Program-made: the position numbers and the translations under genes
The notes under the pieces: model-generated
Database searches by the model: none
Seen by the model: only the letters and a program-made list of their open reading frames with translations
What the model was told of the DNA's origin: nothing
Shown: positions 6,601-63,622 of the stretch, in pieces
How positions within the stretch are numbered: the stretch's first letter is position 1
Layout of the letters: each line of letters begins with the position of its first letter
NCBI GenBank assembly: GCA_002269645.1
Contig: NIVC01000114.1
Coordinates: 682,001 to 746,000, forward strand
Reading direction: 5' to 3'
DNA length: 64,000 nt
From: Macrostomum lignano
Taxonomy: Eukaryota

Positions 6601-9600
6601 TTCACTGACTGACACTTCACTGACTGACACTTCACTGACAGACACTTCACTGACAGACACTTCACTGACAGACACTTCACTGACAGACACTTCACTGACA
6701 GACACTTCAATGACAGACACTTCATTGACAGACACTGCACTGACAGACACTTCATTGACAGACACTTCATTGACAGACACTTCACTGACAGACACTGCAC
6801 TGACAGACACTTCACTGAAAGACACTTCACTGACAGACACTTCACTGACAGACACTTCATTGACAGACACTTCATTGACAGACACTGCACTGACAGACAC
6901 TTCATTGACAGACACTTCATTGACAAACACTTCACTGACAGACACTTCACTGACAGACACTTCACTGATAGACACTTCAGTGGTAGACACTTCACTGATA
7001 GACACTTCACTGACAGACACTTCAGTGGTAGACACTTCACTGACAGACACTTCACTGACAGACACTTCATTGACAGACACTTCAGTGGTAGAAATTTCAC
7101 TGACAGACACTTCAGTGGTAGACACTTCACGGACAGACACTTCATTGACAGACACTTCACTGATAGACACTCCCGTGACAGACACGCAAACAACAGCTAT
7201 ACAGAATTGTATTTACAGAATGACACAATTTTCTTTTTACTTTTTTCTTGGCAGAAGAGTTTCTTAATTTACCCACGTGGTAGAGAGTTTAAGTTATAAA
7301 TTATTTAACTTTGAGCCTTGTTAGCCCCTTCAGTATGTGTCAGCCTGCCTATTGTGATCGTGCTTCTTGGCATGCAATGCCAAGAGTTATAAATTAATTT
7401 GATATCTCATTTTATACTGTGCCAACTTTTAATTAGATATGTTCTCAGCAATCTGCAGCAAAGCGGGTTGTAGCCTAGTGGTTAGAGAGTCGGAATCACG
7501 ACTGAAAGATTGGGGGTTCGATTCTTGGACCACTCAAAACAATTTATCAATCTGCAGAAATCAGCTATAAATCTGCAGTAAGCGGTTGTCAATCTACAGT
7601 AATCAGTTATCAATCTGCAATAATCAGTTATCAATCTGCAATAATCAGTTATCAATCTGCAATAATCAGTTATCAATCTGCTGTAATCAGTTATCAATCT
7701 GCAGTAATCAGTTATCAATCTGCTGTAATCAGTTGTCAATCTACAGTAATCAGTTATCAATCTGCTGTAATCAGTTATCAATCTGCAGTAATCAGTTATC
7801 AATCTGCTGTAATCAGTTGTCAATCTACAGTAATCAGTTATCAATCTGCTGTAATCAGTTGTCAATCTACAGTAATCAGTTATCAATCTGCAGTAATCAG
7901 TTATCAATCTGCTGTAATCAGTTATCAATCTGCAGTAATCAGCTATCAATCTGGAGTAATCAGTTATCAATCTGCAGTAATCAGCTATCAATCTGCAGTA
8001 ATCAGTTATCAATCTGCAGTAATCAGTTATCAATCTGCAGTAATCAGTTATCAATCTGGAGTAATCAGTTATCAATCTGCAGTAATCAGCTATCAATCTT
8101 CAGTAATCAGTTATCAATCTGGAGTAATCAGTTATCAATCTGCAGTAATCAGCTATCAATCTTCAGTAATCAGTTATCAATCTGGAGTAATCAGTTATCA
8201 ATCTTCAGTAATCAGTTGTCAATCTTCAGTAATCAGTTATCAATCTACAGTAATCAGTTATCAATCTGGAGTAATCAGTTATCAATCTTCAGTAATCAGT
8301 TGTCAATCTGCAGTAATCAGTTATCAGTCTGCAGTAATCAGTTATCAATCTGCTGTGATTAGTTATCAATCTGCAGTAATCAGTTATCAATCTGCAGTAA
8401 TCAGTTGTCAATCTGCAGTAATCAGTTATCAATCTGCAGTAATCAGTTATCAATCTGCAGTAATCAGTTATCAATCTGCTGTAATCAGTTATCAATCTGC
8501 AGTAATCAGTTATCAATCTGCTGTAATCAGTTATCACTCTGCTGTAATCAGTTATCAATCTGCTGTAATCAGTTATCACTCTGCTGTAATCAGTTATCAA
8601 TCTGCATTAATCAGTTATCAATCTGCAGTAATCAGTTATCAATCTGCAGTAATCAGTTGTCAATCTACAGTAATCAGTTATCAATCTGCAGTAATCAGTT
8701 ATCAATCTGCTGTAATCAGTTATCAATCTGCTGTAATCAGTTATCAATCTGCAGTAATCAGTTGTCAATCTACAGTAATCAGTTATCAATCTGCAATAAT
8801 CAGTTATCAATCTGCTGTAATCAGTTATCAATCTGCTGTAATCAGTTATCAATCTGCAGTAATCAGTTATCAATCTGCAGTAATCAGTTGTCAATCTACA
8901 GTAATCAGTTATCAATCTGCTGTAATCAGTTATCAATCTGCTGTAATCAGTTATCAATCTGCAGTAATCAGTTGTCAATCTACAGTAATCAGTTATCAAT
9001 CTGCAATAATCAGTTATCACTCTGCTGTAATCAGTTATCAATCTGCTGTAATCAGTTATCAATCTGCTGTAATCAGTTATCAATCTGCAGTAATCAGTTA
9101 TCAATCTGCAGTAATCAGTTGTCAATCTACAGTAATCAGTTATCAATCTGCAGTAATCAGTTATCAATCTGCTGTAATCAGTTATCAATCTGCTGTAAAC
9201 AATTATCAATCTGCTGTAATCAGTTATCAATCTGCAGTAATCAGTTATCAATCTGCAGTAATCAGTTATCAATCTGCAGTAATCAGCTATTAATCTGGAG
9301 TAATCAGCTATCAATCTGCTGTAATCAGTTATCAATCTGTATTAATCCACTTCCTGAACCGGTCTTATGCAAAGTTTAAAATTCTAAGCCGGCAAACTCT
9401 ACTAAAAGCAAGCAAAATCGTAAAATGACTTTATTGTTATTATTTAATTTTTATTTCAACCCGAACTTCCAGTTGCAGTGCTGCTTTTCAAGTACGTGCA
9501 GAACCGTCGCAAAGAGTCTGGCACCTACGGTCCGTCCAAGGCTGAGAGTCGGAGCAACGCCCACGCGCAGGCCCAGCCACCTGTGAGGCCACCGCCTGAG

Positions 9601-9615
9601 GAGCGCCTCATTTGA
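631..9615 (+). CDS. crb: Crumbs ortholog, 3' part (EGF repeats - 3 LamG domains with interspersed EGF - TM - FERM-binding/PDZ-binding tail); 5' exons lie upstream of the window
   Basis: Exons with GT-AG borders and continuous frame: 631-959, 2299-3569, 3842-4398, 4508-4632, 5406-6167, 9473-9615. Contains the Crumbs-type EGF with a long insertion ([30 protein letters not shown]), three LamG domains and a TM segment ([23 protein letters not shown]). The tail [18 protein letters not shown]...[12 protein letters not shown] carries the GTY and ERLI motifs diagnostic of Crumbs. Confidence 0.93.
1400..2245. repeat. Unclassified interspersed repeat in a crb intron (second copy ~4710-5340), here interrupted by a foldback MITE
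   Basis: Shares blocks with 4710-5340 (caaacaactc.ctagtga; gtcgtttcaaagt.gcagacaataa.acgcctcaa; tgtaccgtgacat.tcgtcg; tagagtcact). Boundaries are approximate. Confidence 0.55.
1616..2017. mobile_element. Foldback MITE with long TIRs and TA flanks (Tc1/mariner-type target)
   Basis: TA|TAGTATTTGTCATGCTATCTCAGCCTAGAGACATCCAAACTCAGCCAG ... CTGGCTGAGTTTGGATGTCTCTAGGCTGAGATAGCATGACAAATACTA|TA. The arms stay inverted for roughly 150 bp and there is no ORF. Confidence 0.85.
5016..5269. mobile_element. Non-autonomous hAT (Buster-like) element
   Basis: Exact 8-bp TSD CTTTAGAG at 5008-5015 and 5270-5277 (central TA). Imperfect TIRs CAGGGGTCGACAAAC and GTTTTCCGATCGCTG. Confidence 0.8.
6225..7186. repeat. 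15-bp minisatellite (GACAGACACTTCACT)n in the last crb intron
   Basis: Direct tandem periodicity; it produces the spurious (DTSLT)n and (SEVSV)n ORFs. Confidence 0.95.
7463..7541 (+). mobile_element. tRNA-like SINE head (family 2)
   Basis: A box TAGCCTAGTGG and B box GGTTCGATTC; homologous to the 5' end of the SINE at 60627. Confidence 0.7.
7545..9345. repeat. 21-bp minisatellite (AATCAGTTATCAATCTGCAGT)n in the last crb intron
   Basis: About 1.8 kb of tandem 21-mers with point variants and no unique spacers. Confidence 0.95.
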
Positions 9616-11650: not shown

Positions 11651-11689
11651 TAGTATCAATAGATACCAAAGAGCGCCAGCATCAGGGGA

Positions 11690-29514: not shown

Positions 29515-30228
29515 AGGGGCTTTAGCACCAGGGGCTTTAGCACCAGGGGCTTTAGCACCAGGGGCTTTAGCACCAGGGGCTTTAGCACCAGGGGCTTTAG
29601 CACCAGGGGCGCCAGCACCAGGGGCGCCAGCACCAGGGGCGCCAGCACCAGGGGCTTTAGCACCAGGGGCTTTAGCACCAGGGGCGCCAGCACCAGGGGC
29701 GCCAGCACCAGGGGCGCCAGCACCAGGGGCGCCAGCACCAGGGGCGCCAGCACCAGGGGCGCCAGCACCAGGGGCGCCAGCACCAGGGGCGCCAGCACCA
29801 GGGGCGCCAGCACCAGGGGCGCCAGCACCAGGGGCGCCAGCACCAGGGGCGCCAGCACCAGGGGCTTTAGCACCAGCGGCTTTAGCACCAGGGGCGCCAG
29901 CACCAGGGGCGCCAGCACCAGGGGCGCCAGCACCAGGGGCGCCAGCACCAGGGGCGCCAGCACCAGGGGCGCCAGCACCAGGGGCGCCAGCACCAGGGGC
30001 GCCAGCACCAGGGGCGCCAGCACCAGGGGCGCCAGCACCAGGGGCGCCAGCACCAGGGGCGCCAGCACCAGGGGCGCCAGCACCAGGGGCGCCAGCACCA
30101 GGGGCGCCAGCACCAGGGGCGCCAGCACCAGGGGCGCCAGCACCAGGGGCGCCAGCACCAGGGGCGCCAGCACCAGGGGCGCCAGCACCAGGGGCGCCAG
30201 CACTAGGGGCGCCAGCACCAGGGGCTTA
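29515..30228. repeat. 15-bp satellite (GGGGCGCCAGCACCA / GGGGCTTTAGCACCA)n
   Basis: Tandem array in which the two variants occur in blocks. Confidence 0.95.
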
Positions 30229-31081
30229 TCATTCTTGAGAAGGCATCAAAAGTTAATACTTTTACACAGAATGCCTTGAAAAATGTTTAAAAATGTTGAG
30301 AAAGCAATACCTATTAGCTGAATAATTCAGTATTTACTATATATAAAATAGGAATTATATAAATTAGAAAATTGTCCACACAAGCACAGGGTAATCATCT
30401 TTAATTTTCCTCAATAACTCAGCCGGAACTCGCTCACCGATAGACACTGGGCAAACTCAAATTCACCTGCTGCACGAACTACAGTACAAGCATTGTGCAA
30501 TGGAGAAGTGGAAGCACATGCACCATTTTTAATTTTCTAATTGTTCGTACTGATTTAAATTGATTAGTTCTCGCTTATCTATTTCAGGTATACCCGTATC
30601 TAGAAACTACTAGAGTTTTTATAGCGATTTTCATAACCAATTTTATACACTTCGATACATATCGGTTCAAACCGTTTTTATAGAATATTGCAAAATCTGG
30701 CTGCTTTCCCTTCAAAATACGCATCATAGTTATTTTTGTGTCTTTTTATTCATTTATTTTTATTTCGTGCCTATTACAGTGCCAGTTATATGGTATTCAA
30801 TTAATTTTTTAGTAAATTACATCGATATTGCTATATTCAGGTTGCGTTACTATCACCTAATCAACAACTTAGATCAAAGGGCTTTAGTTGTTCTTCGAAA
30901 AATGCAAAAGATAATCAATCACTACATGCTCAAAGCAGAAATAAAAAATATGACTTTCAAATATTTAGTTTTTAAAGGGTTAGAATATAAAATAATGTCA
31001 ATATTCGAATAAAATATATCGAAAAGCGCTATTTATACTACTATATTGCCTTAAATATCACTTCTGACACCCCAACGAATG

Positions 31082-41922: not shown

Positions 41923-42966
41923 TCAAAGGCAACTCTCGTTAAAAGCACCAGCAAAACGCGAACCAGCCCGCACAGAATCAGCAGATGGAAGGTAGGCAGT
42001 CACAGCATCACTTCGCCAGTCACCGATGCACTTCACCTCCTGAACAGATAGTCCGAGACGGTAGGCCCAGGTGGCACCACCTCTGCGCAGGCTGTGCGCT
42101 GAGAAAGAACGAGCGTCCTGCTCAGCAGTTGCTAGGCAGCGCTTGAGGAACCTGTCGAATCTTGAGGCAGACAGGACAACAGAGGATCCGCTCGCCAACT
42201 GGTAGGAGAACACAGGCTGCCTGCAGCCAAGCTTGCTGACACGGAGGTGACCCTCTAGCGCAGCCACTGGGCAAAGCGGATGTCCTTCTTTTAGCCTTGG
42301 AAGCAACACCCGGTGCAGCTTCGCGCCGAACTGATTCGTCTTGCCATAACTGACAGAGAGCACAACCCCCTTCGGGTGGCGTTGAAAGGCTGAGACGGAA
42401 ATCGGTGAAGCGGACTGCTGACTGGGCAGGAGACTGGAGCGCCGAAACATCCCCCACCAAGCAATAAGCGTCACAAGCCAGCAGACTCTGTCAAGCGAAC
42501 TGCTCGAGTTAAGCCGGTTTTTCACAGACAGCAGCATCGCAGGCGAGATCGGCAGCTTCCGTCTTGGTCGCTGGCCCATCCTCCGTTTAGCGCCGCGAAC
42601 GAGCAGTGAGACCAGGTGGTGTTTTGTTAGGTCCTCAGCACCACAGGCTTTGAACCAGCTGGACAGTGCACTGACATGGACACGCAGACTGTTGAACGAT
42701 CTCAGGCGGCATTCGACCAGGTGAGCCAGGTAGTTGAGTAGCACCGACCGGTCGGATCGAGCCGGGTTGGTCCCGTTCTCGTTGCAGAAGCTGTGCCAGG
42801 ACCGGACGGCCGATGAGATCGCCCTGCGTGACTGCGGTGCGTATGCTGCGGCGAGGAGGCTGGAGGCGGCGGCGCCGAGGGTCGGCGTTGCAGGGAGGCG
42901 GCCTGTGAAAATAAAAAACGGGAGGCAAAAACAGAAAACGCGTGATCCGAAAACTCCACAGGGCAA
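41923..42966 (-). CDS. Tyrosine recombinase of the Ngaro element
   Basis: Catalytic residues in order: GMFRRSSL (R), GKTNQ (K), SAHSLRRGGAT (HxxR), GDWRSDAVTAY (W...Y). The true start is uncertain and the ORF overlaps the RT/RH ORF. Confidence 0.9.
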   Translation of the reverse strand: MPCGVFGSRVFCFCLPFFIFTGRLPATPTLGAAASSLLAAAYAPQSRRAISSAVRSWHSFCNENGTNPARSDRSVLLNYLAHLVECRLRSFNSLRVHVSALSSWFKACGAEDLTKHHLVSLLVRGAKRRMGQRPRRKLPISPAMLLSVKNRLNSSSSLDRVCWLVTLIAWWGMFRRSSLLPSQQSASPISVSAFQRHPKGVVLSVSYGKTNQFGAKLHRVLLPRLKEGHPLCPVAALEGHLRVSKLGCRQPVFSYQLASGSSVVLSASRFDRFLKRCLATAEQDARSFSAHSLRRGGATWAYRLGLSVQEVKCIGDWRSDAVTAYLPSADSVRAGSRFAGAFNESCL

Positions 42967-44615
42967 ACTGGTACAGACCCGTAAACACGGAAAATAAAAT
43001 TAAGCAACTCATGACGCGAGTGCAGGCGGGACCCTGCATCAGCAAACAGCTGATAAGCACCAGGAACGTGAAAGACCTCAAATTCAACGTCAAAACGCAG
43101 ACAGAGCAACGCCACAGACTGCAGCAACCACATCAGACGCGAGTCCTTGGAGACACCTCGCCTTAGAATCCAACACGCCGTCTCATTGTCGCAGTACACA
43201 GCAAGCCGACAACCAGCCAAGGATTGGCCCCATCTCAAAACAGCCAGCAATATAACCACAGCCTCCTTGTAATTGATGCAGTAATTCTGAAAAACACCAT
43301 TTGCGTCGATCTGCCAGTCAATAAAGCACCAATCACGAATCCCATCACCGTCACGGAGCACCGCCGCGGCGCCTGAAGACGACGAGTCAGTCTCTATGGC
43401 AACACAAGCCCTCGGCGAAGTCCACAGGCCAACACCGATGCGATGCTGCAAAGCCAACCGCCACCAGGAGAGGTGGTGCACCACGGAGGGACTAACAAGA
43501 ACCCTGTCATGAGGCCGATGCAGCTTGTTAACAATGTCGATAAGAGGTCGGAGGAAAGCTCTCCCGTGCCGAACAACTTGCGACGCCCAGTTTAACTTGC
43601 CGATCAACTTCTGCAAACACGACTTTGACAGCCTTTTCTTCGAAGAGCAGAGGGATAAAACATGCAACAAGTCTTGGACTTTTTCGGCAGGAAGAGACAT
43701 CTGGCCTGCCACGCTATCAAATAAAATGCCCAGAAAGGTCATCCGCGTTGTCGGCGGAACACACTTGCTACGGTTAACGGTGAAGCCTAGCCGCTCGAGC
43801 AGATCGATGAGATGGTTGTAGAACTTCCAGCAGGACTCCAGATCTCCACAAAAGGCGAAGTCATCCATGTAGGCCTCCATAGCGTAGAAACCATGCTTCA
43901 ACATCATAAAACGCACAGCTTGGCTCAGCTCGTAAAAGCAGAAGACGGAAGCCGAAGCACCAAACGGGAGCCGCGTGTCGTACAGGTACACTGGCTGGCC
44001 CTCGCCTTGGAGCTGAATCTTCATGCCTGTGACCCGGTGGTCATCAGGGTGCACACCACATGAACGATATGCTTGCGACAGATCCACTTTGCACATGTAC
44101 GCGCCGCTGTACAGCTTCGAGGCAAAGTTGCTGGCCGAAGTAAAACGCAACTTCCGTTTCGACTCAAAGAAATCATTCACAGAGGCGCCAGTTGGCAGGC
44201 TGCAGTCGTGAATAAGGCGGATGGAAGACGAATCCGCCTTAGGGATCGCACCAAGGGCACTAACGATGAGCGGCCGGTTGCCTGCCTGGCAGCGCCTGTA
44301 GCGGTCCTGCTTGAGCTCCTGGCGCATCTGGGCCTCAACAGCTTGCTGGTGAATGGTAGCTGATCTGTGATTTGCCATCTCAGTGTGGTTCTTACAATCC
44401 ATCACTTTATTAGTAATTCGAAAGCCATTCTTCACACCATCGAGCACGAACCTGACACGGTCCTCCGGCATCTCGGTCCCAGCCAGCTCTTCCCGCCAAA
44501 CCGCAAACACAAGGTCGCTCGACAACTCAGTTGAACTCGGGTCACATAGGGGGAGCTCCCCCGTGGGGGCACAGGAGGGCGACCCGACGGCAGACATTGA
44601 GTCCTGTGCCCCCAC
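42702..44615 (-). CDS. Reverse transcriptase - RNase H of the Ngaro element
   Basis: RLIHDCS, KVDLSQAY, RLPFGAS, YMDDF and FLGILFDS (RT); IETDSS, INYKEA, YCDN and HVPGAYQLFADAGSR (RNase H). Confidence 0.93.
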   Translation of the reverse strand: MGAQDSMSAVGSPSCAPTGELPLCDPSSTELSSDLVFAVWREELAGTEMPEDRVRFVLDGVKNGFRITNKVMDCKNHTEMANHRSATIHQQAVEAQMRQELKQDRYRRCQAGNRPLIVSALGAIPKADSSSIRLIHDCSLPTGASVNDFFESKRKLRFTSASNFASKLYSGAYMCKVDLSQAYRSCGVHPDDHRVTGMKIQLQGEGQPVYLYDTRLPFGASASVFCFYELSQAVRFMMLKHGFYAMEAYMDDFAFCGDLESCWKFYNHLIDLLERLGFTVNRSKCVPPTTRMTFLGILFDSVAGQMSLPAEKVQDLLHVLSLCSSKKRLSKSCLQKLIGKLNWASQVVRHGRAFLRPLIDIVNKLHRPHDRVLVSPSVVHHLSWWRLALQHRIGVGLWTSPRACVAIETDSSSSGAAAVLRDGDGIRDWCFIDWQIDANGVFQNYCINYKEAVVILLAVLRWGQSLAGCRLAVYCDNETACWILRRGVSKDSRLMWLLQSVALLCLRFDVEFEVFHVPGAYQLFADAGSRLHSRHELLNFIFRVYGSVPVCPVEFSDHAFSVFASRFLFSQAASLQRRPSAPPPPASSPQHTHRSHAGRSHRPSGPGTASATRTGPTRLDPTGRCYSTTWLTWSNAA

Positions 44616-44623
44616 CTCGCACG

Positions 44624-45715
44624 CTAGTTTTTTGAAAATTGGCCCGGGTCCCCATCAGCGTGGGCTCGGGCTTCAGAGTGCGGCTGTGAGCACCTGCGGC
44701 ACTGATGGGCGAAGCGGCAGTGAGTTCTGTTGCAGCCGCTAAGACTGTTGAAGTCGAAACAGACAGGTGGCTGCGTTCGCTTTTTAGGCGCTGTTGCGTT
44801 TATCATTTTTGTTGGTGCCATCAAGTGTGTTGCCACCAGACCCAGGTCTGCGCTAACAGCGCTCCACCGCGTTCCATCATGCTGGAGAAGCCGACATTCG
44901 TCATCATATCTCATGACTTTAGTGCGATCGAAGCCTAAATCTAGCAGGTCACCAATTCTAGCGTTATGTCGGAGATGATCGATCAACTCGGATGAATCGA
45001 TTCTGCCATCAACAATGCGCAGCAGTTTGCCATCACGCAGCATTTGCACCAGTAAGTTACAGCTACCGGAGATGAAATCGCCAAACGACAGTGACTCGGG
45101 ACTGACGTGTCTCAACCTCTCTGGCTTTGCCGCTCCCACAACAGACTGGCTTCCTTGTCTCCGCTTACGCTCACTGATAAAATCAACGACTCTGTACACC
45201 GCCGGCGCCTGAGCATGCGAAGTTGCAGCCCCAGCCTGCCCGAGTATACACTCGCCAACCAAATCATGCCACTCACCGGGAGTCTGATCACGTTCTCTCG
45301 CAGCCGCCGTGCCACTGTGACGCGCTTCAGCGAGCTCGGCTTCGAGCTGAGCCTCTCTTTTTTTCAGGTCCAGCAGCCGAATGCGCAGTTCAGTCTCTCG
45401 CAGCTGATCCTCGAGACCGCCTCCCGTCGCCGCCCGACCCTCGGCCGAGGCGCCCACCGCCGGTAGCATCTCGTCCTCAGGTGGAGCCAGACTTAGCTCG
45501 GGTGCGCCCGCATTCGTCGGTGATGTCTTGTCATCTTGAGCACGACGAGATGAGCCTCTGTCCTGCTCCAACGCCTGCCGCTCAAGCTCCTTGGCAATGC
45601 TGAGTTTTAGACGACTTGTTAGCTCTTGCTTATTGCCATTAGTAGACAGGCCGCGCTCACTAAGGGCTTCTCGTAGCGCTTTGTTAGTTGCGGGCAGTAC
45701 AAGGCTATCTGCCAT
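44624..45715 (-). CDS. Gag-like ORF1 of the Ngaro element, with an N-terminal SAP-like motif and a C-terminal CCCH-type zinc finger
   Basis: LREALSERGLSTNGNKQELTSRL (SAP pattern), a coiled-coil segment, and CFDFNSLSGCNRTHCRFAHQCRRCSQPH. Confidence 0.85.
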   Translation of the reverse strand: MADSLVLPATNKALREALSERGLSTNGNKQELTSRLKLSIAKELERQALEQDRGSSRRAQDDKTSPTNAGAPELSLAPPEDEMLPAVGASAEGRAATGGGLEDQLRETELRIRLLDLKKREAQLEAELAEARHSGTAAARERDQTPGEWHDLVGECILGQAGAATSHAQAPAVYRVVDFISERKRRQGSQSVVGAAKPERLRHVSPESLSFGDFISGSCNLLVQMLRDGKLLRIVDGRIDSSELIDHLRHNARIGDLLDLGFDRTKVMRYDDECRLLQHDGTRWSAVSADLGLVATHLMAPTKMINATAPKKRTQPPVCFDFNSLSGCNRTHCRFAHQCRRCSQPHSEARAHADGDPGQFSKN

Positions 45716-48411
45716 GATTCAGCAAAAAAATTCAACCGCGAGCAACCCCGCGCAGCCACAAAGGTGGCGGCCTAAATAGGCACGCGCACGCACCAACGCA
45801 CCCACCACCCCACCAGACAGCCAGCACCCAAACAGCCCCCCCTTGCACTAACAGCGGTTAGCCCTCGCGGGCTCGCGCAAACCGATGCAATTTATAAAAA
45901 AATGTTTTAGCAATCTACAAAGCTTCTATCAGAGGTTCAGTAGGTTTGCATTTTTTGCCAAATTTATAGTGCTACTAGGTAAAAACCTACGCTAGTAAGT
46001 TGATGCGTCTGAGTAATTCTTTCCGGCTTCTTAAAATGAATTTGTTGTTTTTGCTCTTCAAACACAGCCTTACAGCCCTAAAGCCACCCCACTGAGCAAT
46101 GCTTATTAAAGTATCCAATTTTAATATAGAATCCTGGATTTTCATTTGTTGCTAAAAATAACTTGTTTCTAGAGATATTTGTTTTCTTGTTTCCGAACTG
46201 CTTCTAAAGCAGAGAAGACACTTGTTTTTCGTATATAGGGCTGCATATATTGGCGTAAAGACCAAAAAACGTCTTTGCTCAATGTATATAACATACAGGC
46301 AACAATAAAAGATGAACTAGCACTGAGTACACCAGTAAAAAACACGTAAATGCGCCTACTCATTTTTGTCAAATAGCGCTCAAGCTGCTTTACGTCTAGC
46401 GAAAGCAAAAAATCAAGTTGAAAAAACACTGCTGCGTTAAGGATTTTGAGAATCTTATCAAATCCTCAATGAAAAAATGCTGCATTGAAATTCATGAAAG
46501 TTCAAAACACAGTCGAAAGATAGCAGTACTTGCAATTGACCCCGAAGCAATGTGAACCAACTGATAATTACGGAATCAATTTTTGTGGACAAAATCAACT
46601 TATCCAAACTGTGAATTCAAGATTCTTTGTCAACTTCATCAAATATAGAAGTTGTAACAGCATGTTAAACACTTACGACGTAGATTTGGAAGCCTGGACA
46701 GCCACATCGTCACATCGAATTAGTAGTGCAAGTTCGTGTCACTATTTGTGACAGCGCCCTTATGCGGTAGCAAGCTAATAGATGAACCCATGTGGTCACC
46801 TCACTGGCTACTATACTGACTTCTATCGCTTAAAGGGATGTCAACCAAGCGCCAGAATGAAGCGTAAAGTGAAGCTACAGACCAAATTGAGTCCATTGAG
46901 AAACACTGAGGCATCGCATCGAAGTCCCTCCTTTAAGCTGCGAAGTGACAAAGAGTTCGAGCGGGCAGTTATCCATTGTACAGTCAATTTGGGCTTTACT
47001 TTGGGCTGCATAGCGATCTTTATAATAAATCATCCATGATAATAATGACAGGTTTGCCCTGGCGACATTGCATGTTAATATCTCGCTGACGGCCAAAAAC
47101 ACAGGCACACACTCACACAAAGTGTACATCGGTCCTGTCTTTCTAATCCGATAATTAGAATAGAACCGTGTTCTATAATTAGAATAGAATAGAAAAGAAT
47201 TAGATAGAACCGCGGTGGCTAAGGCGTCAGAGTTAGGCGCACGTTTATACTGCTGAGTTGCTTTTGCCCCGTGTACACGTATCTTTACTACACATGCACT
47301 TTACTCCACCGCAATTAATCAACTATCGTAGATACCCTTAATATCAGCATTAAAAATAGTTCAGAAACAAGTACAGTTTAAAACTTCGAGACATCAATTT
47401 TGGAGCACTTCCATGGCTTTGCAAGGAATCAAGCCTTAAGATCCGGCTCAATTAGGTGTTTAAGTTGTTCTCCATTTAAAGGATCGTTCACGCCCAGGAG
47501 AGTCGCCACCGAGGGGGGGCGGTTAGGGGGACAGGGGGCCAATGCTTTGTCCCCCGCAACCTAATGAGTGCCTGCGGCGCTAAAATGAGTGCCTGCGGCG
47601 GTAAAATGAGCGCTGACAACACCGATTCTGGAAATAATGTACATGTACAGGTGAATTCTTGACTTTTTCCCCCACTAAAAAACCATGGCAAAACCATTTG
47701 TAATCACGTCACAATAAAGGAAGGCAAATTTTGAATGACATGGCCTGTGTACACCGTTGGAGTTGTTTGATGCTATTCGATGGCACAAACAAGCCTTTAA
47801 GCCGTCAATTGTGTGAGGTCATAGGGCACCGGGCACTGGTTTTGGTGTCATGTACATTGCTTATAATTTCTCTATACAAAGAAAACCTTGGCCGCCGCAC
47901 ACCAACGCAGTAGAGGCATATTTAATTCATATAAAAATACCTTTCCGTCTGCATTGATTTTACGGTAAAAGCTGTCAAAATATTTCTGTTACCTTGTTCA
48001 AATTCGAGCGTAAAATAATAACAATAAAGAAGCCGAATTTCAAAAAAAAGAAAGTTAGGCTGGCCAGAGCCTGAGATCCAGCGTGAAAAATCCTAAAGTA
48101 AATTTATAATAGAACACTCAAGAGGATGATGCAATGAGATTTTGTGAATCTTAAAATAGTCTATCGCGTTTTAAAAAGGTTCTGGATATTCTGCACCCAA
48201 GAAACGTACATAAACATTTTTTAAATAAATGACGGAGCTAAGTACTCGTAGAGACGTAGATATTTTCAAATGAGAATAAGCTAAGATGTGGGGCCCAAGT
48301 ATTTGCTTAATGAAAAGAGGAATTTTAGTAAAATGATAAAGGAATAAAGATATTTACAATCGATAGAATGTCAACAATAACAGTAACAGTAGACAGGAGC
48401 CCATCGACTGC

Positions 48412-54782: not shown

Positions 54783-55136
54783 TAGAGACAGGGTGGGCGG
54801 CTGTGTGTAGTCTGGTGCACTTTAAGCGACATTGTCACACAACCGGCGAGAGGTGCATTACTGTCTATTCTGCAGACTCCCCTGAGCAGGCACACAAGAT
54901 ACGTACGCACAGATACGCACACATCACACAGGAGTGTACAGCGGCCCTGACTCTTTTTATTGCTAAGCATGTACACTTCACTGTGCCTTGCAGTTGTCCC
55001 TCAAAGGTGTTAATTGCACGAGCAGAGCCAAGCCGAGATTTCAGTTTAGCCCCAAATTAATGTGACTGCACTTGGAATCGAGCCTGGGCCGCTGACGCAT
55101 ATGTTGGGCTGCGCCTGACCACTGGGCTTTCGTGCC
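54783..55136 (-). mobile_element. tRNA-derived SINE (family 1)
   Basis: Minus-strand head GGCACGAAAGCCCAGTGG...GGCTCGATTCC; homologous to 1-143. The 3' boundary is approximate. Confidence 0.7.
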
Positions 55137-55775: not shown

Positions 55776-58700
55776 TTAATACAAGCGTTTGAACAGGTAT
55801 TTAACCATCTTCCCTGTTTTGTGAATTTTGGGGTACCTCTTCCGTGTATTACTTGTGCCATTTTTAGGCATATACACGATATCCGGTTTTGCATATGATT
55901 CATCGTCAGTTGCAGCATCACGATGAAATAGCTCCACTCTGGGCCTCGGCTTTGGCGCCTGTTGACCCGGCTGTGAATCATCTTGCAAGCCGCTGTTAGT
56001 TGCTGCTTCAGCGGGAGTCTAAAATATAATTGCTACTATAGTGGCTTAAGCATGTACGAGTATTATTAGCTTAGTCTGTTTTTGTGTTCCTTGCAAAAAG
56101 CTCAATACTTTTAAAAGTAAACAAATACTGCTAAAAGTTTGAGTAGACGATTCTACATACCGGGTAGTCATATTCACTGGTGGCAATTGTACTTTCCTGT
56201 CAAAGAAACGGTTGAAAAAAATAATAAAAATTGCCATAAATCATTTTGTCTTAAAATAACAGCATATTAAGCGGAAGTCGTACCTGTAGTCTGTCAGCAA
56301 AAGCATAATTTGAATGAGACAGGTCTACTGACTCTTCACCGATCGGTCTCTGTCATAAGATAAAAACATTGGGGGAAAATTAAGCAACGTGCTCAAAATT
56401 CATCCGAAAATTTCTGACTGCTGAATGTAAAAGTGAAAGCGATGGAGCGGAGGTGTTGGAAGACTAAAATTTTGGCGCCCTTTTTACACCAGCTGTAGCG
56501 CTCTTCTTCCACATTTTAGCGTTCCTCAACAACTACTTTGGCTATGGCGCCCCTGGTGCTGGCGCCCCTGGTGCTGGCGCCCCTGGTGCTAAAGCCCCTG
56601 GTGCTAAATCCCCTGGTGCTAAAGCCCCTGGTGCTAAAGCCTGTGGTGATAAAGCCCTGTCAATCGAAGAAGTTAAATCGTAAAAAAGCATTAGATGAAA
56701 TTTTCGCTCACATTTTCATGACAGCAACGATTTCTAAATCGACGCCTGGCCAATAGGATCAGAAACACAGCGGAGAGAAATGTTGCTGGGATGACGATTG
56801 CAATGACGATAACACGGGTTTTCGATGTAGAAAGTGCACCTTCAGTCACTTGCGACGTAACTGAAACTTTGTTTGAGGTGTGCAAAGCAGATTTGGCAAA
56901 ATTATTTTCGAGTAAACTTGATATTCATTGCTTTGCTCGAAAAGAGAATGGTATGTCGACTATTTTCAACACAATGAAAGTTAAAATTCTGATCGGTGTG
57001 AAATCTATAGAGCATTCTAGGTCGTAAACATTTAAGATTAAACGCTCTAAAAGAAAATTAATCGCAATGCGAATCAAGATTTTCTGGCCAGTAACACACT
57101 ACCCCCTACTTTCTCGAAAAAAACAAATTTTCTCTGTTTACTGGTTCAAAAGGCACACTAAGAAGGTACCAGCTCCCTACAGTGCAATGCAATGATAAAC
57201 AACAGTCCATTATGCTTGGCCTGGGTTAGATAGTGTGAAGTCAGTAATGCATGAAAACCAAAGCAGAGAAGAGGGTTAGGCATTATACTACTTTTCTGAG
57301 ACTAAAACCCGTCGTTCATTATCGTTGGAGAATAAAGAGAAGAGCAGGAGAAAGCAGTTAGAGAGAAGAGCCTATTTGTAAGGGACATGGCTTGGGTTTG
57401 CAAAACTGCTACACAAAAATAGAAATGAGATAATAGCATGCAAAGGCTCATGCAGAAAAAGGCGTACTTGTGAATAGTGATTCTTCACAGCCAGGTAAAC
57501 ACACAGAGCCGGACGCACGCGAAAAGCTAAACGAACTGTTGAAGGGCGATGGAAGGTCCGAACTGTTGTACAATGAGGCGTTGCTTTTTTCGAAACAGCA
57601 GAAACCTTCTCCGCAAGGATTGAGGTCGCAGTCCGGAATGTCCTTGGAGCAGTCCTTGCCGTGGTAGCCCGAATGACATTCGCAGCTAAAAGTTGGGAGT
57701 ACATGTATGTAGCTCGTACCAGTGGGTTACTCAGCCATATACTTTATTCACGATCGAAACATGCAGAAAGGCAACACCAGCGAACTTACACAAAATTGTT
57801 GTAGAAAATATCGTGACACGTCGCTCCGTTCTCACAAGGCTTGAAACGCTCGCAGACTTTCTCAGCCAGTTTTCCAAGAACCACATTTGTTGAGCCGCTC
57901 GGTTTAATTGCTCCAGGAAAAATATCTTGTAGCGTTGCTGCTGGGGAGCTGAGAAGTAAAGCTGTGATTCCATTGATCCTGGTCGAGCCAATAATACCTC
58001 GAAATGCAGTAACATTGGCTACAGATGAAGATAAATTAGGATCCCAAACGGATCTTCTTGATCTGTCATTGCGGCTCAAAGGCGGAGCCGATGCTGCCGT
58101 GGCACCGTTAAAACCGCCGATGATGAGCTGGCCTGACAGCTGCGGCAGCGGACTCGCACTGCTCAGCGATGCCGACCTAACTGAAGATGACACTGACAGC
58201 GACAGCGAGCGACCCGATATAGACACGGAGATCTTCACGGAGACGAAGCTGCCGGTGGCCACCGAGTCTGAGGACGTCAGCGCTGCGATATCGGAGCCGT
58301 TGCTGTGCAGTAACTGGGCGGACAGACGGCCAGAGCGATCGATCTGAAAAGATTTTAACAAACTGAAAGATCGCACTAAATTCAGAAAAAAGAACCATTA
58401 AGGACACTGACCGTAGCGAGCAGTCTCGGAGTGGTCGCCGAGTCGCTCGGGTCGCCCAGCAGCAGCAAAAAAGCTCCTCGAGACAAAGTCACCAGCCTCA
58501 GCTCAATCGTCCACGAGTCTCCGCCAGACACACTTGACGCATTTGGCAGAGAAGCGAAACTCGCAGACGATACAACTCCGCTTATGCCGAACGAGTACAG
58601 CGGAAGCAGCACGGAGCAGTTTTTGCCTCCGAACTCAGTGGGGCAGCCGGTGCAGGCATAATCCGCTACCAGGTCCTTGCAGACGGCTCCGTTCTGACAC

Positions 58701-59318
58701 GGCTGTCCGAACCGCTCGCACTCGTTGATGTCGACTGAGCAGGTCGGGCCCTCGTAGCCGGGCAGGCAGTCGCAGGTGAAACTCCTGACACCATCGGTGC
58801 ACCCGCCGCCGTGCTGGCACGGGCTCGACGCGCAGTCCTCGATCTTGGAACTGCAGGTGTCGCCTTGGAAGTCAACGCGAGAGCAGTCACAGGTGTATCT
58901 GTAAGTTTTGAAACCAGTTAGCTACAAATACATTTTGGTTACAGTTTGGTTTTGTACCAACTAGAATCACGCAACTTACGTTGAGTTTCCGTCCTTACAG
59001 ACGCCGCCATTCCGGCAGGGCTTTGACAGGCAGTAGTCCGTATCTACGGAGCAGTTTGTGCCCTCCCAGCCTGTGAAGCAGGTGCAGCTGTAGTTTTGCA
59101 CCAGGTCAATGCAAAGGCCATTGATGCAGGGCTGGTCATGATTCAAAGCTAAACAAGCAAGCAGTTAAAATTTTCAGATTCTGTATGAGAGAAGTTGACT
59201 TACCTGAATCTCCCATCGCTTCATTTGTGCAAAAATGGATGATAAAGCTATTATAATTACCATCATTACTATTTTTTGTAACGGAGTAATCGGTTGATGA
59301 AGCGTTCCAGATGCCATC
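55776..59318 (-). CDS. Crumbs-like paralog B: EGF repeats, 1 LamG, degenerate Crumbs-type EGF, TM, Tyr-motif cytoplasmic tail
   Basis: Exons: 59318-59204 (non-EGF), 59148-58980, 58898-58412, 58343-57790, 57685-57468, 56860-56712 (TM VIVIAIVIPATFLSAVFLILLA-RRRFR), 56349-56284, 56196-56161, 56018-55776. A further hydrophobic exon probably ends at 59393. The start codon was not found and the 3' end of the last exon is uncertain. Confidence 0.75.
56546..56655. repeat. 15-bp satellite array in an intron of gene B
   Basis: (GCCCCTGGTGCTGGC / GCCCCTGGTGCTAAA)n; same family as the 11690 and 29515 arrays. Confidence 0.85.
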
Positions 59319-60379
59319 CTGTAAGCCTTAGAGGTGAAAAAATGTAGCTTGCTTAAACAGCTATCCGCATTTTTCATCGAATCTACTCATACCGGTAAGT
59401 GAGAGTGGATTTTGATAAGCAGGACCAATACAGTAGACACTTAAAGTGAGTCAGTAATATGAATTTCAATGTATCTATAATTTAAAGTTCATTTTCTAAG
59501 CTTCTGGGGTTGATTCACAAGAAAATATTAGGTGCAGCATTTAAGCCACAGTCTAAATGCTTTAAGATGTACTCTCTGTGCCCAAAATTAGCCTAAATCG
59601 AAAAATTAAAAAAAGAAAAAACTCACAAGTTTTTTTGTTTTGCTCAACTTATGAAATTGCCTGCTACGGATAAATCACGAATATTGGGGTTCTTTCAGAT
59701 TGGATAATAATAAAGTGATAGGTGGCATAGATCGGAAGAAAACTTCGAGACCCGAGTCTTCTACTCGTATTTATTGAGTATAAGGGCGCATAAACTTGTT
59801 TATGCTATCGAGAACTTATTTACATTAGATAGTCGGATTATATGTATAGATTACTCATCACAGAGGCATTTATCTGTATCTACTTGAGAAACTGAAATGT
59901 TTAGCACCAGTGTTTTTTTCTATTTGAGCTCAACTTCCTTAAAAAAAATAGCCACATTATGCATTGCAATGCAGCTCAAGCAGCAGTGAGGCGTACCGTA
60001 AACAGGCGTTTTAAAATACCTAAAGCTATGCTATTATTCTATAGTTAAATGAAGCAACAAGCCTTCCTGCTTGTGTACTCAGAGAGTCATAACTGTCTGG
60101 AAAGTTTGCTATTTTTAGAACAAAAATATTTACGCTTTCACGGCATGCAAGATGCAAGTTGACACTCCTACTTTGAATAAACAAGCACAGTTTTGCTCGT
60201 ACCCAATAAATTTTTTCCGTGAGCTTAGTAGCAAATCTTAGAAGCGGTTCGAGCTACCAATTGATGACGCCCCAGGGATTTGAGCAACCGCAATGAATTC
60301 CACAGACGTCATAGAGATGCATTTTGCTGATGAAGTATTCCGGGGTGCTCCGTCTAGAGAGTACACATGACAAGCAACC

Positions 60380-60915: not shown

Positions 60916-61822
60916 TAATTACTCGTAATTTATATTGTTACTTTTAAATCACCTTTGGTAGATACATATATTTTGTTAGCTGAAACATTTCCTCTATTAA
61001 ACTGGTCTCATGTTCAGGAAAATAAAATATTGCTACGAGCGAATGACCATTGACCAAAGCAGTATAACACTTAGTTTGTACTTTAAAAAGCCAATTAATT
61101 TTGTTAGTGAGATGAAATGTGCAACCACCAGTGTAATTTTCAATAGTCATTTCAATAAAAACGAAACTTGAAACTGAATGAATGTCATTTTGAAAAGTTA
61201 AAAAACGGTCAGAGCTCACCACCTGCTTACCAGAAATGAAAAAAGCGGTAAAATTTTTTAATAGCCACACAGAGCTTAAAAAAGTGGCTACGAATAACAA
61301 TAACACAATCGTTGCTGTACCTTGCTGCTAAAAATATGTTGAACTTCTTTAACAGTACTTCAGTAGGTACATACGTTCTTTACAAAGTTTATTATGTCGA
61401 ATCCAGCTAAAATTTATTTACAACATTAAGATATACATCTGATTTAATAAAAAGCAACTTGCGCGATTTTTCAAAATAAATAAATATGCTTATAGTATAA
61501 GTGCAAGCAGCATATATGTGGTATTCAAAACTATTTTATATGTGCATGAGAATCTAAATTTTAAGATATGATGCAGACCAAGACACTGTACACGCCAGTA
61601 TATTTTGACCTCTGAAACAATACTTGGATTAAAAATACGAAATCTTACTTGGTAAAATAATTTTCTCTGGAGTAATAATATGGTCTGAAATAGTCGAATA
61701 AAAAGTTGAATAAACCAATGGTTAAAATATTACACGGTAGTTAACTAAAAAAGAGGTCTGTTGCAATGTGTGCACACGCATAACATATTAAAAAACACCT
61801 CCTGGGGCACCGGTTTGGCCAA

Positions 61823-63622
61823 CTACGATCCCAGATGCCCAACCCAAACCCCGGCGGTTGGATCCAACCTACGAGTATACTGGGACTGAAGATCCGATGA
61901 GGCGTTTGGGCGGAACAGAGTGATGAACTTTGCCACCAGGACAATAGCTGATATGGGTTTTGGGACATTAGGGATGAATCCATCATTCTTTTTATCCAAG
62001 ATAATAAGTAAAGACTAACAATTTCAGGATCTTATCTGATAAAACGGCCCTTCTAGTGTGGAACACCAAATTGTACTATATTATCTAACGTTGCAGCCCC
62101 TCAAAAGTAACGCAAAAAATTACGTTTTTTTTTCTCAAAAACCTAAATAAAAAGCAATCAAACTTCATGATTTGGTTACAGAAGTTACAGAAGCTCAACT
62201 TTTGCCAGCTCTTGGACGTGGCATCCACTGACCTAGTACTCGTAGACATGGTAAGGAGCGCCCTCCTAGGAGTCAGGGGCACCCACATAGGAGATGCTAA
62301 GCGATTATCATGTACTGACACAATGCTGAAACTTTCCTCTAAATTTACGATTTTGTATGCTGAATACAGTTAAACAAAAAGTCCTGTCAAAAATTACTAA
62401 CCAACAGCAATGCCAGCGGCGACAACAACTCCAGCAACGATTCTAATTATCGCTCCCACCGAAAGCACCGGAGCGGCAGCAGAGCACGTGGGCCCGGAGA
62501 ACCCATCATTGCAATCGCAGAAATACTTGTTCCACATGTCGATGCAACGACCGGAGTTCTGACAGACACCCGCTTTACATACTACGTCTCCATGGCAACC
62601 AGGCGTTGGTGAGATGGTTGAATCCGCGTCAGTTGCAGACCAGGAAAATCCCGGCGTGTCAGAGGGGAGCGACCGGTTCACTAGCGGGACCAAGTAGCCG
62701 TTGAGTCGCACGTTGCCAAGGCAACCCTTGAAGCCGCTGTCGCCAAGAACTACCACAGCCGCAGAGTCGAGAATCAGCGGTGCAAAGTCATGAGATTCGC
62801 TGAAAGTCGTAGCAGCGTCGGTGCCATCGAACTTCGCACTGAGTTCTAAGCGCCGTTCGGTGAAAAACCTGACGCCAAACGTAAATGGGATGCTGGTTGC
62901 TATGGAGAAATCGGACATCACGTGCTTGTTGTCAAGGGACACTCGCAGATGGCCGGACTTGGCCTCGACAAACAGCTGGCGACCGTCGCGGTTGGTCATC
63001 GACAGCAGACGGAAGTTCAGCTCGCGGGTGCGGGCCCAGCCAGTGAGGCTAGTCAATGCTTCATTGAAGCGGCTGGCCGATAATCTCAGCTTTGTGGAGG
63101 ATTGGAATGTGGCGGCTGTGCGACCTGGCGAGTTTGGTGGATGGACAAGCATAAAATGCAGTCATTTCGTCGCCATTCATAGATATATTAAGAAGTATAT
63201 ATTCAGCTAAGAAACTGGGCGTCTGTATGAGTGCAAGCCTGAGTACAGTAGGTGCTCATGAGTCAGCGATATGGATAGAATTGCTTCAGGTTGAATGCTG
63301 CTGAAAGCGTTGCATCAGGGGTGTCACAAACCTCCTGTGAGTTTGACGCTGCAGTTTTTGCCTCCGAACTCAGCGGGGCAGCCGGTGCAGGCATAATCCG
63401 CTACCAGGTCCTTGCAGACGGCTCCGTTCTGACACGGCTGTCCGAACCGCTCGCACTCGTTGATGTCGACTGAGCAGGTCGGGCCTTCGTAGCCGGGCAG
63501 GCAGTGGCAGGTGAATGAGGCCAGGCCGTCCGTGCAGCTCGACGCGTGAGCGCACACGCTGCGGTTGGTGTCCGGATCCAGACAGTCGTTCGGGTGGATC
63601 TCGCACGTGTCTCCGAAGGTAC
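61823..63622 (-). CDS. Crumbs-like paralog A (3' part): EGFs, LamG3, EGF, TM, truncated tail; possibly a pseudogene
   Basis: Exons: 63622-63332 (EGFs, ends KLTG-G|gtttgt), 63124-62402 (LamG3-EGF-TM, paralog of crb 5406-6167), 61947-61823 (AIVLVAKFITLFRPNASSDLQSQYTRRLDPTAGVWVGHLGS*). The 5' exons lie beyond the window. Confidence 0.65.

Follow-up and report, generated by a model that had tools for sequence, protein, structure and literature searches.

A predicted tyrosine-motif receptor tail in an unannotated member of a tandem Crumbs-derived gene array of Macrostomum lignano

A partly annotated array of Crumbs-like genes

The 64,000-nucleotide stretch of DNA analysed here (the window) matches Macrostomum lignano contig NIVC01000114.1 at 100% identity, record coordinates being window coordinates plus 682000, and lies within a large array of tandemly arranged Crumbs-like EGF/LamG genes. 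The array spans at least 230 kb and is annotated only in part; in the 31.7-kb stretch around P0001, the sole called gene is P0001 itself, and the terminal exons of paralog A fall in this stretch without a gene model. This partial annotation is relevant to M. lignano users working on epithelial polarity or regeneration. We focused on the 3' module of the unannotated paralog B, which lies on the minus strand at 55776-56860 and comprises a transmembrane (TM) exon, two micro-exons and a terminal exon. The best protein matches were M. lignano BOX15_Mlig proteins, and the annotated sister genes of B, all labelled ‘hypothetical protein', are P0002 (BOX15_Mlig025742g2), P0003 (Mlig015644g1), P0009 (Mlig017317g1) and P0008 (Mlig022007g1), three of which (P0009, P0003 and P0002) map to 791-912 kb of this contig. 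Together with B these genes are referred to below as class II. Vertebrate CRB1 was among the cross-species matches with the broadest coverage (27% identity over 67-77% of the query). A literature search on M. lignano Crumbs genes turned up nothing relevant, and a tRNA-like stretch at ~60.65-60.74 kb was not a tRNA gene according to ARAGORN.

The reading frame of paralog B is intact over 1905 nt and eight exons, with no stops and GT-AG borders at every intron. Its intron phases read as 2, 0, 2, 1, 0, 0, 0, in agreement with P0002 at the corresponding junctions; counting a candidate 5' exon, the gene would have ~9 exons and encode a membrane protein of ~670 residues. Exon 1 (58980..59131, minus strand as for all B exons) encodes an EGF repeat truncated to start from its second cysteine (PCINGLC...), followed by another EGF; it aligns to P0002 residues 298-349 and has a phase-2 gtaagt donor as in the paralogs. 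EGF repeats and the start of the LamG domain are encoded by exon 2 (58412..58898), the remaining LamG and the start of an EGF by exon 3 (57790..58343), and an EGF with an insert (CFEKSNASLYNSSDLPSPFNSSFSF...) by exon 4 (57468..57685), which ends in a phase-1 donor and is 46-52% identical to the equivalent exon of P0002, P0003, P0008 and P0009. The exon 4 donor (CAA/GTACGC) is weak (score 1.1), yet it is the top-scoring one among frame-compatible donors; an alternative at 57505 scored higher but broke the frame, another at 57489 was frame-compatible but scored -4.3, and 57468 was retained. Pfam analysis of the B model identified EGF (E 8.5e-17), hEGF and Laminin_G_2 (E 7e-4, under the curated cutoff).

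The 5' end sets B apart from its class II relatives. DNA homology to the other copies begins mid-exon, at 59133, and P0002 residues 1-297 found no match between 59134 and 61790 upstream of B, such that B is without the family signal-peptide exon and the ~300 residues of N-terminal EGF exons present in the paralogs. Having lost these exons, B may have recruited a new signal-peptide exon, at 59204..59326 (minus strand). This hypothetical first coding exon has an ATG at 59317 and would encode MASGTLHQPITPLQKIVMMVIIIALSSIFAQMKRWEIQ, a signal-peptide-like sequence with a hydrophobic core of ~3 (11-residue Kyte-Doolittle window). Its splice sites score well (acceptor 10.1; donor CAG/GTAAGT, 12.2), and it joins 59131 in frame through a 72-nt intron, the family short-intron class being 69-106 nt. 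The acceptor used at 59131 is weak (-0.5), the resulting EGF has five cysteines, and no second copy of the candidate exon was found in the window or the fetched loci.

These 5' features bear on whether B is a working gene. The truncation would fit a 5'-truncated silent or decaying duplicate (a pseudogene or fragment), in which the tail exons would be relics of a once-functional class II gene and their motifs would have no present function. The same reading accommodates the weakness of several splice sites (exon 4 donor, 1.1; terminal acceptor, 3.0), introns longer than those of the paralogs (607 nt ahead of the TM exon, against 80-100 nt in three of them) and the insertion of a minisatellite, and the tail of the neighbouring paralog C contains an in-frame TAG, which indicates that decay does happen in this array. 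Annotation points the same way, since the B tail exons occur in none of the protein models in a database of 5.8 billion clusters that includes the annotation of this assembly, although the gene set is RNA-seq-based: Mlig_3_7 is a genome-guided RNA-seq assembly from which novel transcripts below 0.5 RPKM were dropped (PMC5730564), and the BOX15 models appear from their Mlig names to derive from it. By contrast, B has kept every intron phase across its intact frame, the candidate signal-peptide exon is strong and correctly placed, and exon/intron GC contrast is sharp. Furthermore, comparison with the paralogs shows saturation at synonymous sites in exon 4 and in the TM exon, yet the frames are still open; in all, 712 nt (exon 4, TM exon and tail) remain open despite synonymous saturation against every known paralog, which argues against long neutrality since many stops would then be expected. 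The ectodomain dN/dS values also argue against decay, being 0.13-0.41 in comparisons with well-aligning paralogs (0.26-0.41 for exon 3) and 0.57-0.63 for exon 2 against P0009 and P0008. Taken together, we consider a decaying duplicate possible but unlikely.

Transmembrane and tail exons of paralog B

The initial annotation had described the TM exon and three tail exons with their borders; the coordinates, translations and splice borders were all as claimed, with AG/GT borders throughout. The TM exon (56712..56860; 149 nt) is preceded by tttcag and followed by gtgagc, with a phase-1 acceptor and a phase-0 donor, and when read from its third base encodes TSQVTEGALSTSKTRVIVIAIVIPATFLSAVFLILLARRRFRNRCCHEN. 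It contains a hydrophobic span of ~22 residues (VIVIAIVIPATFLSAVFLILLA) followed by RRRFRNRCCHEN; a single hydrophobic span followed by RRRFRNR fits the positive-inside rule, with the signal peptide present only as the candidate exon. Micro-exon 1 (56284..56349; 66 nt, phase 0-0, tgacag/.../gtacga) encodes RPIGEESVDLSHSNYAFADRLQ and micro-exon 2 (56161..56196; 36 nt, phase 0-0, tgacag/.../gtatgt) encodes ESTIATSEYDYP. All three tail introns are in phase 0, and therefore both micro-exons are symmetric. The terminal exon (55776..56018; 243 nt, acceptor ttttag) comprises 80 codons and a TAA; its first part is acidic and tyrosine-containing (DDESYAKPDIVYMPKN) and it closes with an unusual basic stretch (NTRKRYPKIHKTGKMVKYLFKRLY); the last 25-30 residues of B are basic and resemble no paralog tail. 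A direct reading of the sequence places an ATTAAA overlapping the stop codon. Between the TM exon and micro-exon 1 lies an intronic minisatellite (56549..56657; 15-bp unit, 7.3 copies), which belongs to a repeat family shared with arrays at ~11.6-12.3 kb and 29.4-30.2 kb.

Splice sites across the 1.2-kb region were scored with a position weight matrix (PWM) derived from 41 introns in five paralogs. Among 55 GT dinucleotides, the donors of micro-exon 2, the TM exon and micro-exon 1 ranked first, second and fifth, respectively; among 78 AG dinucleotides, the acceptors of micro-exon 1, the TM exon, micro-exon 2 and the terminal exon ranked 1, 3, 8 and 14. Base composition follows the same borders, the GC content being 0.44-0.47 in the proposed TM and tail exons compared with 0.29-0.31 in the two introns between tail exons and the 3' flank (micro-exon 2, 0.44 versus 0.29-0.30 in its flanking introns; terminal exon, 0.47 versus 0.31 in the 3' flank); the intron between the TM exon and micro-exon 1 has a higher GC content because of the 15-bp minisatellite. 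Codon usage trained on the TM and tail exons of the paralogs preferred the claimed frame in four of four exons, a weak signal. The splice-site ranks, the GC contrast, the frame preference and a layout shared with the paralogs suggest that the exon model reflects more than chance, and we regard the TM/tail exon model of B as plausible.

A different 3' structure of the mRNA of a real B gene was weighed against this model, in which one or both micro-exons would be skipped or be chance AG..GT segments, or the protein would end early. The terminal-exon acceptor is weak (3.0) and is outscored by an acceptor at 56100 (5.7), use of which would end the protein after nine codons (...SEYDYP-LFARNTKTD-stop). 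An in-frame acceptor at 55970 (3.8) would remove 16 residues, retention of the intron after the TM exon would give ...CCHENVSENFI-stop, and the minisatellite holds a 120-nt phase-0 open segment with a good acceptor at 56656 (8.0). In addition, no counterpart of micro-exon 2 could be demonstrated in the paralogs. Against these possibilities, the top-scoring acceptor of the region belongs to micro-exon 1 and the top-scoring donor to micro-exon 2, the GC steps fall at the proposed borders, the motif YAFADR, discussed below, lies within micro-exon 1, an open frame of 80 codons whose GC is exon-like comes next, and the paralogs have one to three such exons. We therefore judge an alternative 3' structure very unlikely.

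Relation to Crumbs and to the class II paralogs

The tail that defines Crumbs is 37-38 residues long, carries the FERM-binding motif GTYxPS and ends in ERLI (PMC3564977). Paralog A, used here as a comparator, has an intact and canonical Crumbs tail (...GTYGPS...PPPEERLI-stop) encoded in its last exon (9479..9615, plus strand; junction 6167/9479, phase 1). The B tail possesses neither element: the juxtamembrane FERM-binding motif R..GTYxPS present in paralog A is absent, and in place of the PDZ-binding ERLI the protein ends in ...KYLFKRLY-stop. Alignment of the two tails gave a non-significant z of 1.4. The proposal that the B tail is unrelated to the Crumbs tail thus held up against a textbook example in the same window. 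Like Crumbs and CRB1-3, B has EGF repeats and laminin-G in its ectodomain and one TM span after it. It differs in its LamG count (one rather than three), in its unsplit TM, which occupies a separate exon, and in a tyrosine-rich tail of ~125 residues over three exons in place of the GTYxPS/ERLI tail. Two resemblances, between the P0003 end ADRI-stop and ERLI and between the class II juxtamembrane GKGS[FL]TS and GTYGPS, were noticed by eye alone; the exon structures are different, and a Crumbs origin of the tail is not claimed. Similarity of the TM exons was dropped as a test because it did not discriminate: the score of B against the Crumbs TM (z 3.2) was on a par with its scores against class II TMs.

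In contrast to Crumbs, the class II paralogs share the 3' layout of B. In B (57685-57468 and 56860-56712) and in all four paralogs, the EGF-with-insert exon ends in a phase-1 donor and is directly followed by a separate TM exon ending in phase 0, and the TM exons of P0002, P0003, P0008 and P0009 match that of B in position and phases. In these four genes the TM exon is followed by one to three phase-0 micro-exons and a terminal exon, the exons after the TM measuring 72, 78 and 135 nt in P0009, 72, 75 and 126 nt in P0002, 69 nt and then 57 nt with the stop in P0003, and 33, 114, 90 and 147 nt in P0008, all in phase 0. The symmetric micro-exon build described for B is thus real as sequence and is mirrored in phase 0 in P0009 (72/78 nt), P0002 (72/75), P0003 (69) and P0008 (33/114/90). 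B shares with these genes the order LamG, EGF, EGF-with-insert, TM and tyrosine-rich tail, the same intron phases, the separate TM exon, the small phase-0 tail exons and a Y-x-x-[AS]-[DT]-[RE] block. It differs in being unannotated, in a tail that is otherwise unalignable, with a unique CC and a basic C-terminus, and in having only two micro-exons (66 and 36 nt), the first micro-exon of the paralogs being without an evident counterpart by eye.

This shared block is the only B motif with positional counterparts in the paralogs: SNYAFADR (YAFADR) of B corresponds to YTFADY, YATADR, YLTSDR and YASATE. It is encoded by micro-exon 1 in B, by the second small exon after the TM in P0009, P0002 and P0008, and by the short terminal exon in P0003. 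The score of the block was reached by 4 of 2000 shuffles at a length of 6 and by 41-117 of 2000 at lengths of 7-10, with P0003 and P0009 not mutually independent. Whole-tail Smith-Waterman comparisons between B and the paralogs did not outscore shuffles (z between -0.3 and 1.8), and for this reason tail homology rests on the exon layout and this one six-residue block; MAFFT alignment of the tails was uninformative.

Database searches returned no ortholog or close copy of the B tail in any resource searched. The 163-residue TM and tail gave no matches at E<=0.01 in a word-indexed search of 5.8 billion clusters, and an HMMER scan of the cytoplasmic tail against 1.84 billion representatives gave a single match, P0107, a BTB zinc-finger protein whose internal repeats were matched in six stretches and which was judged compositional. 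A profile built from five class II tails retrieved nothing beyond near-identical copies of P0008 and P0009, blastn and tblastn searches of the tail against the window and the fetched loci matched only the intronic minisatellite, and Pfam found no domain in any tail of the B model or the four paralogs.

These comparisons bear directly on the proposal of the initial annotation that a Crumbs ectodomain had been fused, specifically in B, to a phosphotyrosine-signalling tail from a donor gene, with EYDYP and ESYAKP as Abl/Src substrates recruiting Crk/Nck and a palmitoylated CC pair. The patterns are present: the tail carries EYDYP, ESYAKP, SNYAF and IVYMP and a juxtamembrane CC adjoining a polybasic stretch, it bears no relation to the Crumbs tail that paralog A encodes, and P0002 likewise has one YxxP (KYAEP) and two YxN sites. 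However, the TM exon with its micro-exon-encoded tyrosine-rich tail proved to be a subfamily trait, found at the same position and with the same phases in at least four other, annotated paralogs, and hence was not acquired by B; neither the 5.8-billion nor the 1.84-billion protein search produced a donor of the tail. EYDYP, ESYAKP, IVYMP and CC are B-specific, with no counterpart in any paralog. The three YxxP patterns (YDYP, YPTP and YAKP) are pattern matches, which alone have low specificity, and by a rough estimate three among the 8 tyrosines of the tail is only mildly above chance. A B-specific fusion is therefore extremely doubtful.

Predicted tail function and divergence of the array

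We favour, with moderate confidence, the interpretation that 55776-56860 is the 3' module of an unannotated class II member of an M. lignano-specific tandem array of Crumbs-derived EGF/LamG genes, encoding a predicted tyrosine-motif receptor tail. In class II (B, P0002, P0003, P0008 and P0009), the canonical Crumbs 3' end (third LamG, split TM and 38-residue FERM/PDZ-binding tail) is absent, and its place is taken, in this order, by the EGF-with-insert exon, the separate TM exon, between one and three small symmetric exons in phase 0, and a terminal exon. B would be a single-pass type I receptor or adhesion protein. The class II tails appear low in complexity, acidic and probably disordered, with 4-6% tyrosine in most members; the B tail, which is also proline-rich, has 6.3% tyrosine compared with 1.9% in its ectodomain, and the paralog tails have 5.4-6.1% (P0002 and P0009), 3.8% (P0008) and 2.2% (P0003). 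Judging from its sequence, the B tail may work through short tyrosine-centred linear motifs, serving as phosphotyrosine docking sites or sorting signals, and the phase-0 exons would permit in-frame isoforms. If B is expressed, this gene and its class II relatives would demonstrate that the Crumbs scaffold is separable from the conserved FERM/PDZ polarity tail and has been re-used with fast-evolving, tyrosine-studded tails. With an ectodomain apparently homogenised by conversion, a TM on a separate exon and symmetric micro-exons, they would be a clear case of modularity in receptor evolution. The practical value is modest so long as B is known from sequence alone.

The divergence between copies is unevenly distributed, the ectodomain exons being far more alike than the TM and tail exons. 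Between P0003 and P0009, dS rises towards the tail from 0.04 (LamG) through 0.17, 0.22 and 0.75 to 1.48, and exon 2 of B has a dS of only ~0.09-0.11 relative to P0002 and P0001, with one 165-bp tract being 98% identical to 2406-2570 and 63351-63515. We read the low dS of exon 2 as gene conversion, and the pattern as a whole as gene conversion in the ectodomain with free divergence in the tails. A broader proposal would treat Crumbs in this species as a tandem receptor repertoire, in which a dozen or more copies carry conversion-homogenised EGF/LamG ectodomains, each copy has its own TM/micro-exon tail with different tyrosine-based outputs tuned by splice isoforms, and B is a recent member with a de novo signal-peptide exon; this is speculative and quite improbable in our estimation.

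Flatworm coding sequence built from short symmetric exons, with in-frame variation possible, is known from the schistosome micro-exon genes (MEGs) (bioRxiv 10.1101/2023.06.21.545858). No homology of B to MEGs was found; MEGs encode small secreted proteins from exons that are nearly all 3-81 bp, while in B two of ~9 exons are micro-exons and encode the cytoplasmic tail of a membrane protein.

Draper/CED-1/MEGF10 and DNER are type I proteins with EGF-rich ectodomains and unstructured tails that use tyrosine motifs (NPxY, YxxL/ITAM and YxxPhi). They may offer a functional analogy for the action of the B tail; no sequence relationship was found. By contrast, neither an NPxY nor a paired YxxL/I ITAM occurs in B, whose sole YxxPhi-type site is RYPKI. 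Among the M. lignano paralogs, the types of tyrosine motif vary.

Exon structure of the paralog B tail

The tail of paralog B, an unannotated Crumbs-like EGF/LamG gene, had been proposed in the initial annotation to consist of four exons including symmetric micro-exons, and all four were recovered on the minus strand at exactly the positions proposed. The transmembrane (TM) exon (56860-56712; 149 nt, tttcag/gtgagc borders) takes in 2 bases of a split codon at its start, and its product is a ~22-residue hydrophobic span leading into RRRFRNRCCHEN; micro-exon 1 (56349-56284; 66 nt, product RPIGEESVDLSHSNYAFADRLQ), micro-exon 2 (56196-56161; 36 nt, product ESTIATSEYDYP) and a terminal exon of 80 codons plus TAA (56018-55776) follow. 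The micro-exons are indeed symmetric, all three tail introns being in phase 0, so that any combination of them keeps the frame. The full model (59131-58980, 58898-58412, 58343-57790, 57685-57468 and the four tail exons) gives an uninterrupted ORF of 1905 nt with GT-AG at every junction, and its intron phases, read as 2, 0, 2, 1, 0, 0, 0, are the same as those of the annotated family protein P0002.

Using a splice-site PWM trained on 41 family introns and applied to the 1.2-kb region, the proposed donors ranked 1, 2 and 5 among 55 GTs, and the acceptors 1, 3, 8 and 14 among 78 AGs. The mRNA may be spliced differently at its 3' end: an acceptor at 56100 (score 5.7) would yield a product ending YDYP-LFARNTKTD, use of an in-frame acceptor at 55970 would remove 16 residues, and retention of the intron after the TM exon would give the end CCHENVSENFI. 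As for the proposed exons themselves, their GC content is 0.44-0.47 versus 0.29-0.31 in the two introns flanking micro-exon 2 and the 3' flank, the first tail intron being GC-rich only because of a 15-bp minisatellite (56549-56657); furthermore, a codon-usage model derived from paralog tails showed a weak preference for the claimed frame in 4 of 4 exons.

Class II exon layout and relationships of the tail

Three kinds of C-terminus were found in the family. The canonical kind is intact in paralog A (plus strand, ~600-9615, model 602-9615, last exon 9479-9615), which carries the FERM-binding GTYGPS and the ERLI end (PPPEERLI), the motifs that define Crumbs (PMC3564977), and which is a bona fide Crumbs gene. 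Class I (P0001, P0004, P0006 and three copies in the window) has an intron-split TM, as in Crumbs, and a tail that, judged by eye, resembles a divergent form of the Crumbs tail. Class II (P0002, P0003, P0008 and P0009) displays the order LamG, EGF, an EGF-with-insert exon (CLERS...PFNGSFxY...), a TM exon of its own and a Tyr-rich tail. The ectodomain of paralog B ends in the class II manner (CFEKSNASLYNSSDLPSPFNSSFSF), and paralog B is a member of this class.

Mapping the four class II proteins to their own genomic loci revealed small tail exons of 72 and 78 nt with a terminal exon of 135 nt in P0009, 72 and 75 with 126 nt in P0002, 69 with 57 nt (end ADRI) in P0003, and 33, 114 and 90 with 147 nt in P0008, as compared with 66 and 36 with 243 nt in paralog B. 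The tail introns are in phase 0 without exception in all five genes, each of which also has a phase-1 donor on the EGF-with-insert exon; this shared exon layout is the strongest evidence. Judging from their Mlig names, the BOX15 models of these proteins come from the Mlig_3_7 gene set, a genome-guided RNA-seq assembly built with StringTie/TACO/TBONE/TransDecoder (PMC5730564), so that the micro-exon tails of the paralogs would rest on transcripts and not on ab initio prediction. The 33-nt Tyr-containing micro-exon of P0008 (GKLSLGYFERQ; 8867-8899 of its locus, L004) is absent from the near-identical UniProt models P0104 and P0105, which could reflect exon skipping, a gene-copy difference or a difference in annotation method.

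The tail was confirmed to be unrelated to that of Crumbs. The suggested fusion of a Crumbs ectodomain with an unrelated tail holds only for the subfamily as a whole and is not specific to paralog B, as the layout is common to class II; a donor gene was not found, with no match in a 5.8-billion-cluster protein database and, among 1.84 billion representatives, a single match to a repeat-containing protein that was judged spurious. Neither the window nor the fetched loci contained a paralog of the tail, and whole-tail alignments with class II tails did not score above shuffles. An unbiased anchored-block search picked YAFADR in micro-exon 1, with counterparts YTFADY (P0009), YATADR (P0003), YLTSDR (P0008) and YASATE (P0002); its score was reached in 4 of 2000 shuffles at length 6 and in 41-117 of 2000 at lengths 7-10. 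The block is carried by small tail exon 2 in P0009, P0002 and P0008, and by the short terminal exon in P0003. Save for this one short block, the tail has diverged too far to be recognized. The P0003 product stops after AVYATADRI at a true TAG codon (15349-15408 of its locus, L003), while the block runs on into another exon in P0009 (YTFADYDRI) and into more exons in paralog B (YAFADRLQ); by eye, the C-terminal DRI of P0003 resembles a PDZ-ligand-like end and recalls Crumbs ERLI.

Tyrosine makes up 6.3% of the paralog B tail versus 1.9% of its ectodomain (2.2-6.1% in paralog tails), and EYDYP, ESYAKP, IVYMP and the CC pair have a counterpart in none of the paralogs. It is conceivable that this tail signals through phosphotyrosine, is palmitoylated or is altered by exon skipping.

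Divergence and integrity of paralog B

Exon 2 of paralog B (58898-58412) showed dS of ~0.09-0.11 relative to P0002 and P0001 and shares 98%-identical tracts with other copies; in the EGF-with-insert and TM exons synonymous sites are saturated (pS 0.67-0.89) and the reading frame is still open. dN/dS was 0.13-0.41 against well-aligning paralogs and 0.57-0.63 for exon 2 against P0009/P0008. Between P0003 and P0009 (L003/L001), dS follows a 5'-to-3' gradient: it is 0.04 for the LamG exon and climbs to 1.48 for the final tail exon that both genes share (tail omega 0.4-0.7). These patterns suggest that gene conversion acts on the ectodomain exons alone and homogenizes them, while the TM and tail module diverges in each copy; the 3' exons of paralog B would then have stayed open for a long time.

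That paralog B is instead a silent or decaying copy seems less likely than a working gene, yet it is a serious rival because family homology starts mid-exon (59133), the 5' exon is problematic and no database protein model containing any of its tail exons was found; the Mlig_3_7 gene set discarded novel transcripts below 0.5 RPKM (PMC5730564). Upstream, the signal-peptide and N-terminal EGF exons typical of the family were not found. A unique candidate exon (59326-59204; ATG at 59317, signal-peptide-like sequence) is bounded by strong splice sites (acceptor 10.1, donor 12.2) and could join 59131 in frame across a 72-nt intron of family-typical length, but this join would use a poor acceptor (-0.5) and leave the first EGF one cysteine short. 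Paralog B represents a known kind of protein in a lineage-specific form, and its chief interest lies in gene-family evolution.

The Crumbs-like tandem array

Queries with the spliced model matched M. lignano proteins at 51-76% identity, among them P0001 (BOX15_Mlig031842g2), whose 31.7-kb locus corresponds to 5197-36920 at 100% identity. This places the window on NIVC01000114.1 of assembly GCA_002269645.1 (Mlig_3_7), with record positions 682000 higher than those used here. In the P0001 stretch, the NCBI annotation leaves the terminal exons of paralog A without a gene call. Crumbs-like EGF/LamG genes form a tandem array in the window: besides paralog A, these are, on the minus strand, the P0001 gene (26920 to 15200), additional copies ending at 33808 and 48415, paralog B (~59326 to 55776) and paralog C (TM at ~62400). 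Additional family members lie at 791-912 kb of the same contig. A minus-strand DIRS-like retroelement (41926-45718), with ORFs for a SAP domain, RVT_1 plus RNase H and a tyrosine recombinase (Phage_integrase, weak match), sits between two of the copies. The class I tail exon of paralog C (61788-61945, minus) contains an in-frame TAG at 61825-61823 (VGHLGS-stop-LAKPVPQEVFF-stop), which would be either a pseudogenizing change or an allele, because it would delete the conserved PQEVFF end.

Several tandem-repeat arrays are interspersed among the gene copies. Long arrays occupy ~6.2-9.4 kb in the last intron of paralog A (6168-9478), and an intron of the P0001 gene (~17860-20730) holds a long imperfect repeat with PQPNTKHPTTTQ-like units in translation and strong GC and AT skew. 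The 15-bp minisatellite family (GCCCCTGGTGCTAAA-like; APGAK/APGAL runs in translation) recurs at 11615-12333, 28422-28503 and 29415-30245 as well as in paralog B. Immediately downstream of the 3' end of paralog B, 95 bp (55000-55094) are 90.5% identical to 7-101 in the same orientation and constitute a dispersed repeat. An isolated LamG-exon fragment (11341-11644), adjoining a large minisatellite array, is 88.5% identical to 58273-58571 of paralog B and appears to be a detached part of another copy.
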